Positions 38,201 to 44,123 of a stretch of 64,000 bases of DNA are shown piece after piece. The DNA is from Hypanus sabinus (Eukaryota): assembly GCF_030144855.1 (NCBI RefSeq), contig NC_082723.1, positions 63,426,001 to 63,490,000 of the forward strand, given 5' to 3'. The notes under the pieces were generated by a model. That model saw only the letters and a program-made list of their open reading frames with translations, ran no database searches and was not told where the DNA came from. Within the stretch, counting starts at the first letter, position 1, and each line of letters begins with the position of its first letter. A program made the translations under genes and the position numbers.

Positions 38201-41200
38201 GACCTGAGTTATATGAAAGGACTTTTATTCCTTAAAAAGAAAATTGATATAAGGAGTAGATTTGATAGAGGTGTACAAAATTATGAGGGGTATAGATAGA
38301 AAAGCAGGCAGGATTTTTGAGGTGAGGTTGGTTGCGACTACAAGTAGACGTCATGCATTAAAGGTGAAATGCTTAAAAGGGAAGGTGAGGAGAAACTTCA
38401 CCCAGAGGGTGGTGAGAGTGTGGAATGAACTGCCAGCAAAGTTGGATGTGGGGTTGATCTCAATATTGGAGAGCTATGGTCTGGATGCAGGGCGATGGGA
38501 CTAATGTCTCAGCACAGAATCGATGGGCTGAACGGCCTGTTTCTGTGTTGTAGTGTTCTGTGAACATTTATGTAGTATCTAGGTGAAATCAAGAAGCTGA
38601 AAGTAGCCTGTCAAGCACTGGTAAATGGAATTAATATTGATACTATAGAGTCATTGAACACTGCTTCCATTTACCTTATCTACACCCATCATAACTCCAT
38701 TAAATCTCATTCTCCTGTGCTTCAGGGAATGAAGTCCTAACATGTTCAACCTTCCGCAAAAGTCCTCCCACAGTGCAGGGGCTTGTACTTATCAGGATTA
38801 ACTTCTGTTTGCACTTGCTTACGACACTACACCATAGTCTATGAGTATTCTGTCAAAAACATCCTTTTTTTTCCAAGTCATTCACAAGCTTACTATTCAT
38901 ATCTCCTATGTTCACAAACAGATCTTTATTTATAACAATATATGTTGCAGCAAGGGTCGGCAGGGTTACTGAAGGATTTAACAGGAACCAAATCTAGAAT
39001 AAGTAAGTTTCACGTTAAAGATAAGGGCAGGGCACTTGGGTGTAGAAACATCAGTGGTTATCATGGACCCAGACTGGCCCGTACCAGTGTTAGTTCTGAT
39101 AACCAGACTGTACTTGGACTGTCAGTGTTAAGACGAGTCCTGGCTCTGGCTGATATGATCCCAGGGGTTGGGAGACTGGGCAGCTGCCGCTGCGGGCTGT
39201 GCCAGTGCTAAAGTGCTGACAGTGCAGATAGTGAAGCCGTACCTACTGCACTGTGGGCATTTGTAGCACCACACAGCCAATTCCGGCACAGATGCCAATC
39301 GCCTGGCTTCAGCGGTTGTGCTTGTTTTCCTGATTCCGCCTCGGCAGTTTACCGGCCCTGCGTCTAAGTCTGTCCTGGATGATGGTTTGCAGCCTCCTGA
39401 GCTCTTGTTGATGTTCCACTCACTAGCTATGCATTTGTGGCAGAGCCTGGGTACAACAGGTCTCTGGCTGGTCATGTGTTGCAGTTCCTTGCAGCCAGCT
39501 TCTGACCCTCTAGAGTAGCCCTCAGTGGGTTTTGCATACCTGATCCTCAGCACTCTGCCTGCGTATGTGTCTACTAGTGGACATGACGTGGATTTCTGGT
39601 TTGCCATCTTTCTGATGGTGTGCTTTCCTATTGATTGTGTTGCTTTGTACCTGAGGTGGTGTCTTGCTGAGTGTGTGTGATTGATAGCTTCTGCTGCTTG
39701 GGCTTGGGGGAGGATAGGGAAAGAGCACTTGGGGTGGCCTGAGCTTTGATGCCGACTGGTGGGCGATGATTGCGTCTCCTCGGGCACCGTGAGCCATACT
39801 CACATGCGCTGTACCCGTTTGGCGATGACAGAATTACTGAGGCTCTTTTGGGTGGGAGGCTGATGATACTGCGGAGTCTGCTTCCTGGAGTTCCAAAGTG
39901 CTGTTAGTGCAGGTAGTACTGCTCAAATCTACTGCAGTATAAGCACTTCCAGAACTCCAGGGGCAAGGGCAACACCCTGTAGCAACCTGGGTGAAAACCA
40001 AAGGAAGATGGCAGAGGTTAAGTTGGAAACTGGTGCGCAGTGAGGCACTGTGAAACTTGTCTGCTGGACATCTCCCTGTTGACGGGGATTGTTGGAGTCA
40101 ACTGTGCCACGATTCTTCACTGTGGGCTGAGTAGTGGAGGTTTGGTAGTTCACTTCCACAGCAGAGCTTGAGTGTTCTGATCATAGGTCCATGTGGGTAT
40201 CCTGGGACCAACTGTGCTGCATGCATTTGGTCCAAAGGGCTACATTGTAGCTGTGGTGGGCAGCAGCTTGTACTGACCCTTCAATGGATGCATAGGCAGG
40301 TGCATGGGTTGGTTTAAGCTGAGCTGTAGATATTCTGGGTGTATACCATCACTTTACCCTTCACTTTTATTTTGACCCAACTACTCAGTTGCTATCCCAT
40401 CACAGGCTAGGTTACTGGACGCGGCTGTAGTCAATTCCTCGTGTCTTCTGTGTGGCTATTGTGGCAGGGGTTTTAACTGCCACTCCTGAGTGTGGCACAT
40501 CTGCCCTGGATTTGCTGCAAAGTGCCTTGTGACTTTGCACGGGGCTACAGTGTGCTTTGCAGTGTTGGGTTCAGTCTGTCCTGCTGTGCAAACTCGTGCA
40601 AAACTGATGGTGGCTTTGGCTGGTTCTGTGTCTATGTACTGTCCAGGAATAGAACCTTTCTCTGCTTCACATTGCCCACTTCCACAGTGTAACCTCGCAT
40701 GTTATGGCACTGGGAGGGAGTCGCAGGACTGTTCTGACTTGGCACTGGTTGATTTTAAGTGGGATCTGAAGACCTACAGACATGGGTTTAGGTCACATCG
40801 TTCATTTATCTCACTGAGATCTTTTCCAATTTCAGTGATTTGTTCCTGAGCAACAGTACTGAGTGAATTGGCTGGACAGTTAGTGCAGGAACTGGGGCAA
40901 GGACGTGGGTCAGCCCTGGGTACAGCTGGGTTTTTCATTCGCCCTTTCTCACATACCCCCCAACACTACCACCAAACTGTCCTCAGCACTAATGATGAAA
41001 CTGCCTTTGGATCTGTATACATTTCTGTTTACGGAGATACAGCCCAGAAACTAGTTCTTTGGCCTATTGAAGTAACTGTCATTGCCAATAATAAAATAAC
41101 TGGGCCCAGAACACACATACATACACACGTACACACATACACACACACACACATACACACACACACACACACACTCACTCACTCATAACTCAAAAATTAT

Positions 41201-44123: not shown

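Follow-up and report, generated by a model that had tools for sequence, protein, structure and literature searches.

Does the MCM7 gene of the ray Hypanus sabinus carry the three-member microRNA cluster known from mammals, or does it hold a fourth member, and is that member still a gene? The first-pass annotation of the stretch analysed here (64,000 nucleotides, hereafter the window) had described four hairpins in the order 106b-93-19-25. The order, the strand and the coordinates stand, but what lies at this locus is three hairpins plus one worn, hairpin-like element that is probably a relic (Table 1). The three are described first, and then the descent and the condition of the fourth.

Host gene, intron and the three well-formed hairpins

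The host gene is MCM7, because the flanking exons carry Pfam MCM, MCM_lid and HTH_MCM7 matches. The MCM P-loop domain is matched in flanking open reading frames at 30479-30721 and 33279-33617, MCM_lid at 34190-34498, and HTH_MCM7 in the last exon, at the gene's end, at 43902-44123. The cluster lies on the MCM7 sense strand, in the intron that separates the lid exon from the next one; the lid exon ends in the donor CTG/GTGTGT (34438/34439), a junction that we set by the protein reading ...ISIAL/ARLRMVD... The intronic location proposed in the first-pass annotation is therefore confirmed, with Pfam domains on the exons either side, and the human and mouse miR-106b~25 clusters are likewise found in an MCM7 intron, intron 13 (PMC4834410). 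Downstream of MCM7 there is a run of N (46469-46625), which is an assembly gap or a masked stretch.

Table 1. Features of the MCM7 locus of Hypanus sabinus (positions in the window)
Feature	Position	Strand	Evidence and remarks
MCM7 exon, AAA-lid segment	34271..34438	+	Pfam MCM_lid, E 4e-12; start approximate; final residues ...ISIAL at 34438
MCM7 intron with the cluster	34439..42852	+	GT...AG, 8,414 bases; corresponds to intron 13 of human MCM7
miR-106b-type hairpin (mir-17 family)	39199..39275	+	RF00051 58.8 bits (gathering score 49.5); -48.9 kcal/mol, z -7.04
miR-93-type hairpin (mir-17 family)	39884..39961	+	RF00051 72.8 bits; -43.0 kcal/mol, z -7.56
Degenerate miR-19 hairpin (probably a relic in decay), orthologous to teleost miR-19d	40543..40615	+	RF00245 29.9 bits, E 0.009
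miR-19-like 3' arm, TGTGCAAACTCGTGCAAAACTGA	40585..40607	+	Seed and final 11 bases intact
Microsatellite rich in (AC)n, between the miR-19 element and miR-25	41111..41187		Tandem Repeats Finder, period 4/16, score 105
Worn interspersed repeat, retrotransposon tail type	41375..41960		63-73% identity to five further stretches of the window
miR-25 hairpin	42174..42256	+	RF02020 72.7 bits (gathering score 40.5); -37.1 kcal/mol, z -2.67
Next MCM7 exon	42853..42963	+	Acceptor CCAAAG/GCT, donor AGG/TGAGAA

At the Rfam gathering thresholds, the window contains exactly three RNA matches, two to mir-17 and one to mir-25. All three hairpins hold top ranks among the 1,667 overlapping 80-nt windows of the intron, the miR-93-type hairpin being the most stable of all. 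The first-pass annotation had proposed folding each of its hairpins: these three fold far or clearly better than dinucleotide shuffles (z -7.0, -7.6 and -2.7), but the miR-19-like element does not (z 0.03). The assignment to families is that of Rfam, and the finer names follow from the order of the members and from comparison with the human arms: we take the 5' arm of the hairpin at 39199-39275 to be that of human miR-106b-5p, the 5' arm at 39884-39961 to be one base off miR-93-5p, and the 3' arm at 42174-42256 to be one base off miR-25-3p. Published paralogue letters in the style of the catalogues conflict, and hence no such name is applied here. The mir-17 model also gives 32.2 bits to the opposite strand of the miR-93 hairpin (39885-39960, minus strand), as it should with a near-palindromic stem, and this is no evidence for an antisense gene.

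The ray thus has an ordinary miR-106b~25 cluster, housed in an MCM7 intron. It would be transcribed as part of the MCM7 pre-mRNA, from which Drosha/DGCR8 would excise the three well-formed hairpins (the miR-106b type, the miR-93 type and miR-25), with Dicer acting next.

It is also a wide cluster. The human one spans about 0.5 kb; that of the ray occupies 3,058 bases, its members being separated by 608, 581 and 1,558 bases, so that the spread of about 3 kb reported earlier is borne out by measurement. A good part of this width, not all of it, is owed to the insertion of repeats, namely the two listed in Table 1 for the last spacer. A repeat boundary shows at about position 41064, past which many contigs of related species pile up and diverge. 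The interspersed repeat has several worn copies scattered in the MCM7 introns, which encode peptide fragments typical of a retrotransposon tail; the copies elsewhere in the window lie at 38082-38473, 34995-35348, 32825-33180, 7447-7761 and 24821-25357.

Descent of the fourth element

A lax Rfam scan of positions 38500-43000 (4.5 kb) aligned 40543-40615 end to end to the mir-19 model (E 0.009), its 5' arm included. The same scan of the same 4.5 kb found no relic of miR-18 or of miR-19a between 106b and 93. The resemblance of the element to miR-19 could be fortuitous, or that of a piece of repeat, rather than a mark of descent from a miR-19 of the cluster itself; its Rfam score is under the threshold, and the E value would rise to about 0.1 for a search of the full 64 kb. 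Against chance, the 3' arm has only 3 mismatches to the consensus of the miR-19 3' arm and is the sole such place in the 64 kb on both strands, when no match within 3 mismatches occurred in any of 100 shuffles. The miR-19 seed, GUGCAAA, is present at positions 2-8 of this arm.

The comparison with teleosts points the same way. Carp miR-19d (cca-miR-19d) has the sequence UGUGCAAACCCAUGCAAAACUGA, and has been tabulated as common to zebrafish and medaka (PMC3267759). The ray 3' arm is identical to it at 21 of 23 positions, the differences being confined to positions 10 and 12, and it shares with carp and zebrafish miR-19d a C at position 9, a site that is U in the Rfam mir-19 consensus. On zebrafish chromosome 14, miR-93, miR-19d and miR-25 have been described as one cluster (PMC2427041); the fourth element of the ray, between miR-93 and miR-25 and on the right strand, sits in exactly the slot of zebrafish miR-19d. 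Neither this slot, nor the C at position 9, nor a 5' arm that also fits the family model would be expected of a chance match. An origin from a repeat is countered by the lack of a second copy in the window and by the fact that the element is single-copy DNA in the related species. We thus consider a fortuitous or repeat-derived resemblance to be very improbable, and the orthology with teleost miR-19d to be well supported by sequence and position.

Two further candidates in the same spacer were rejected. The miR-17 seed word CAAAGTGC at 40518 is attributed to chance, being one of only 4 in the window and having no model hit. Between miR-93 and the fourth element, 40175-40262 (plus strand) folds into a single hairpin (-35.1 kcal/mol, z -2.07); it has no Rfam family match and shows 3 changes in the relative X7 (see below), which is the neutral rate, and as a microRNA it is probably fortuitous.

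Probable decay of the fourth hairpin

If its descent is clear, the condition of the fourth element is poor. Its 29.9 bits fall 20 short of the mir-19 gathering score, which is 50. Of the 29 pairs of the model, seven are non-canonical, six of which lie within the miRNA duplex; changes in the 5' arm account for most of them. The fold of 40542-40616 has an energy of -20.6 kcal/mol, which 95 of 200 shuffles equalled; per 100 nt, this is -27 kcal/mol versus -45 to -49 in its three neighbours, and the best 80-nt window of the element falls at the 10.7th percentile of its own intron. Since the folding is no better than that of shuffled sequence, there is no stable fold here, an outcome that the first-pass annotation had itself named as refuting its fourth member. 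Within 119- and 151-nt contexts, moreover, the 5' arm prefers an upstream stretch containing TGCAAAG over the 3' arm: the upstream TGCAAAGTGCC pairs with the 5' arm of the element, GCTTTGCAG (40514-40563, plus strand), and out-competes the miR-19 fold.

Further evidence comes from related species. Six other organisms share 19-36% of the words sampled from 40250-40950, a level that fits relatives diverged by a few percent, and the contigs of four of these six were aligned on 39966-41100, a range that lies between the solid hairpins and short of the microsatellite. Overall divergence in this range is 3.3-3.6% for the four. Two of them (X12 and X7) lack positions 40532-40553, a gap of 22 bases on which the gap table and a halved bin depth agree, and which takes away the 5' strand of the lower stem together with the first bases of the 5' arm; the other two (X6 and X15) keep the element at full length. 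Two CTTTGCA direct repeats flank the gap, as is typical for deletions. Among the differences listed for the four relatives, X12 and X7 share about ten further changes exclusively, and the gap is therefore a derived deletion that occurred in their common ancestor. The reverse event, an insertion in Hypanus sabinus, was rejected, as the extra bases fit the lower stem of the mir-19 model, direct repeats are present and the gap is confined to X12 and X7.

X7 is the one run whose 39 differences are listed in full; there, the retained 62 nt of the hairpin carry 2 changes (3.2%, versus 3.6% overall), a comparison of little statistical power on 62-73 bases. One of the two is in the mature arm, at its position 12 (40596 G>A, at a CpG). 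When the versions of the element in the relatives were rebuilt, none folded better than shuffles (z -1.2 to +1.1). The element thus diverges at the rate of the surrounding intron, and constraint is undetectable on these 62-73 bases with their few changes; conservation of the hairpin among the relatives was not found, given this rate and the deletion in two of the four. A separate 10-base deletion relative to the window (40916-40925) is seen in X7 only.

From the homology, the position, the poor fold and the deletion in relatives, which are all observed, we infer that processing has come to an end: the fourth element would be a miR-19d orthologue that is probably decaying and is no longer a working gene, to which we give a probability of about 0.6. 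The claim of a working fourth member is accordingly not sustained, its fold being unstable and part of it being deleted in two relatives. In this ray lineage, the fourth hairpin has lost most of its pairing, mainly via changes in the 5' arm, and it is most likely a pseudo-microRNA that is disappearing, as miR-19 has done altogether in the mammalian cluster.

The perfect state of the seed and of the 3' half of the mature arm counts against reading the element as a relic. An identity of 21 in 23 to the teleost form, from which more than 400 million years separate it, implies that selection has acted for most of that time. One might thus argue that the fourth hairpin is still a working, though suboptimal, miR-19d gene that is weakly processed. 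Drosha would cut it via the lower stem, perhaps helped by the strong hairpins in its neighbourhood, and the product would be a microRNA with the miR-19 seed and a ray-specific centre at positions 9-12. Besides the intact seed and last 11 bases of the 3' arm, and the match to teleost miR-19d, several observations are in favour: Hypanus sabinus retains an intact lower stem (GGGGCUAC with GUGGCUUU); the isolated element forms a single hairpin in whose best fold 16 of the 23 bases of the 3' arm are paired, about the minimum accepted by curated catalogues; and two of the four relatives retain its full length. A weak hairpin can be processed when a strong neighbour assists it, but such assistance has been described for closely spaced pairs, and the nearest strong hairpins, 581 and 1,558 bases off, are far for it. 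Further points against a working gene are the 20 bits missing to the Rfam cut-off, the z-score of 0.03 for a fold that is not the preferred one in its natural context, the 22-nt deletion in two relatives and the change in the mature arm of one relative, X7. We regard continued, weak processing as less probable than the preferred reading of a decaying orthologue.

The MCM7 cluster in vertebrate ancestry

The mammalian cluster has three members and no miR-19 (PMC4834410). The human and mouse miR-106b~25 clusters resemble that of the ray in their host, MCM7, in their position in the intron, in the three members and their order, and in lying on the sense strand; they differ in having no miR-19, whereas the ray holds a worn copy of it, and a span of 3,058 bases. 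With the teleost cluster, the ray shares a miR-19 copy between miR-93 and miR-25, with the same C at position 9 and a nearly identical arm (21/23). Carp miR-19d is expressed, 59 reads of it having been cloned (PMC3267759), while the ray hairpin is degenerate. Conversely, the zebrafish list contains no miR-106b-type member (PMC2427041), and the ray keeps one. As for miR-17~92 (17-18-19a-20a-19b-92a), the order of families in the ray is the same once 18 and 19a are removed, and, judging from this order, the relic of the ray would match the 19b slot by position. The miR-17~92 cluster is nonetheless a different locus, outside MCM7, with six intact and tightly packed hairpins.

From the orthology of the fourth element with teleost miR-19d, it follows that miR-19 was already present in the MCM7 cluster of the jawed-vertebrate ancestor. 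This ancestral cluster had at least four members, of the 17, 20, 19b and 92 types. That the first-pass annotation saw in the ray locus something closer to the ancestral cluster is thus right in one respect and wrong in another: the slot of zebrafish miR-19d and the C at position 9 indicate that the locus preserves a trace of the four-member state, a trace absent in mammals, but not a working fourth member. It has been proposed that the third cluster is a later duplication in mammals (PMC4421800); its presence in the MCM7 gene of a ray does not fit this model. Both the retention of miR-19d in teleosts and its absence in mammals are already published. We found no literature on a miR-19d element in cartilaginous fishes, and curated catalogues that include sharks may already list an intact copy in other members of this group.

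No large question is opened by this locus, which is probably a tidy example of a microRNA dying within an otherwise conserved cluster. Should the worn hairpin still be processed, it would be a lineage-specific fourth member of the MCM7 cluster in rays, which we find rather unlikely; its product would then carry the miR-19 seed and a centre altered at positions 10 and 12, and would have been kept since the jawed-vertebrate ancestor, with independent losses in some rays and in mammals. The orthologue in a cartilaginous fish places a four-member MCM7 cluster in the common ancestor of jawed vertebrates, so that it is no peculiarity of teleosts. Under the preferred reading, that of a decaying miR-19d orthologue, the rays would have caught the loss of a member in progress, with the mature arm intact, the partner arm eroded and, in sister species, a partial deletion.
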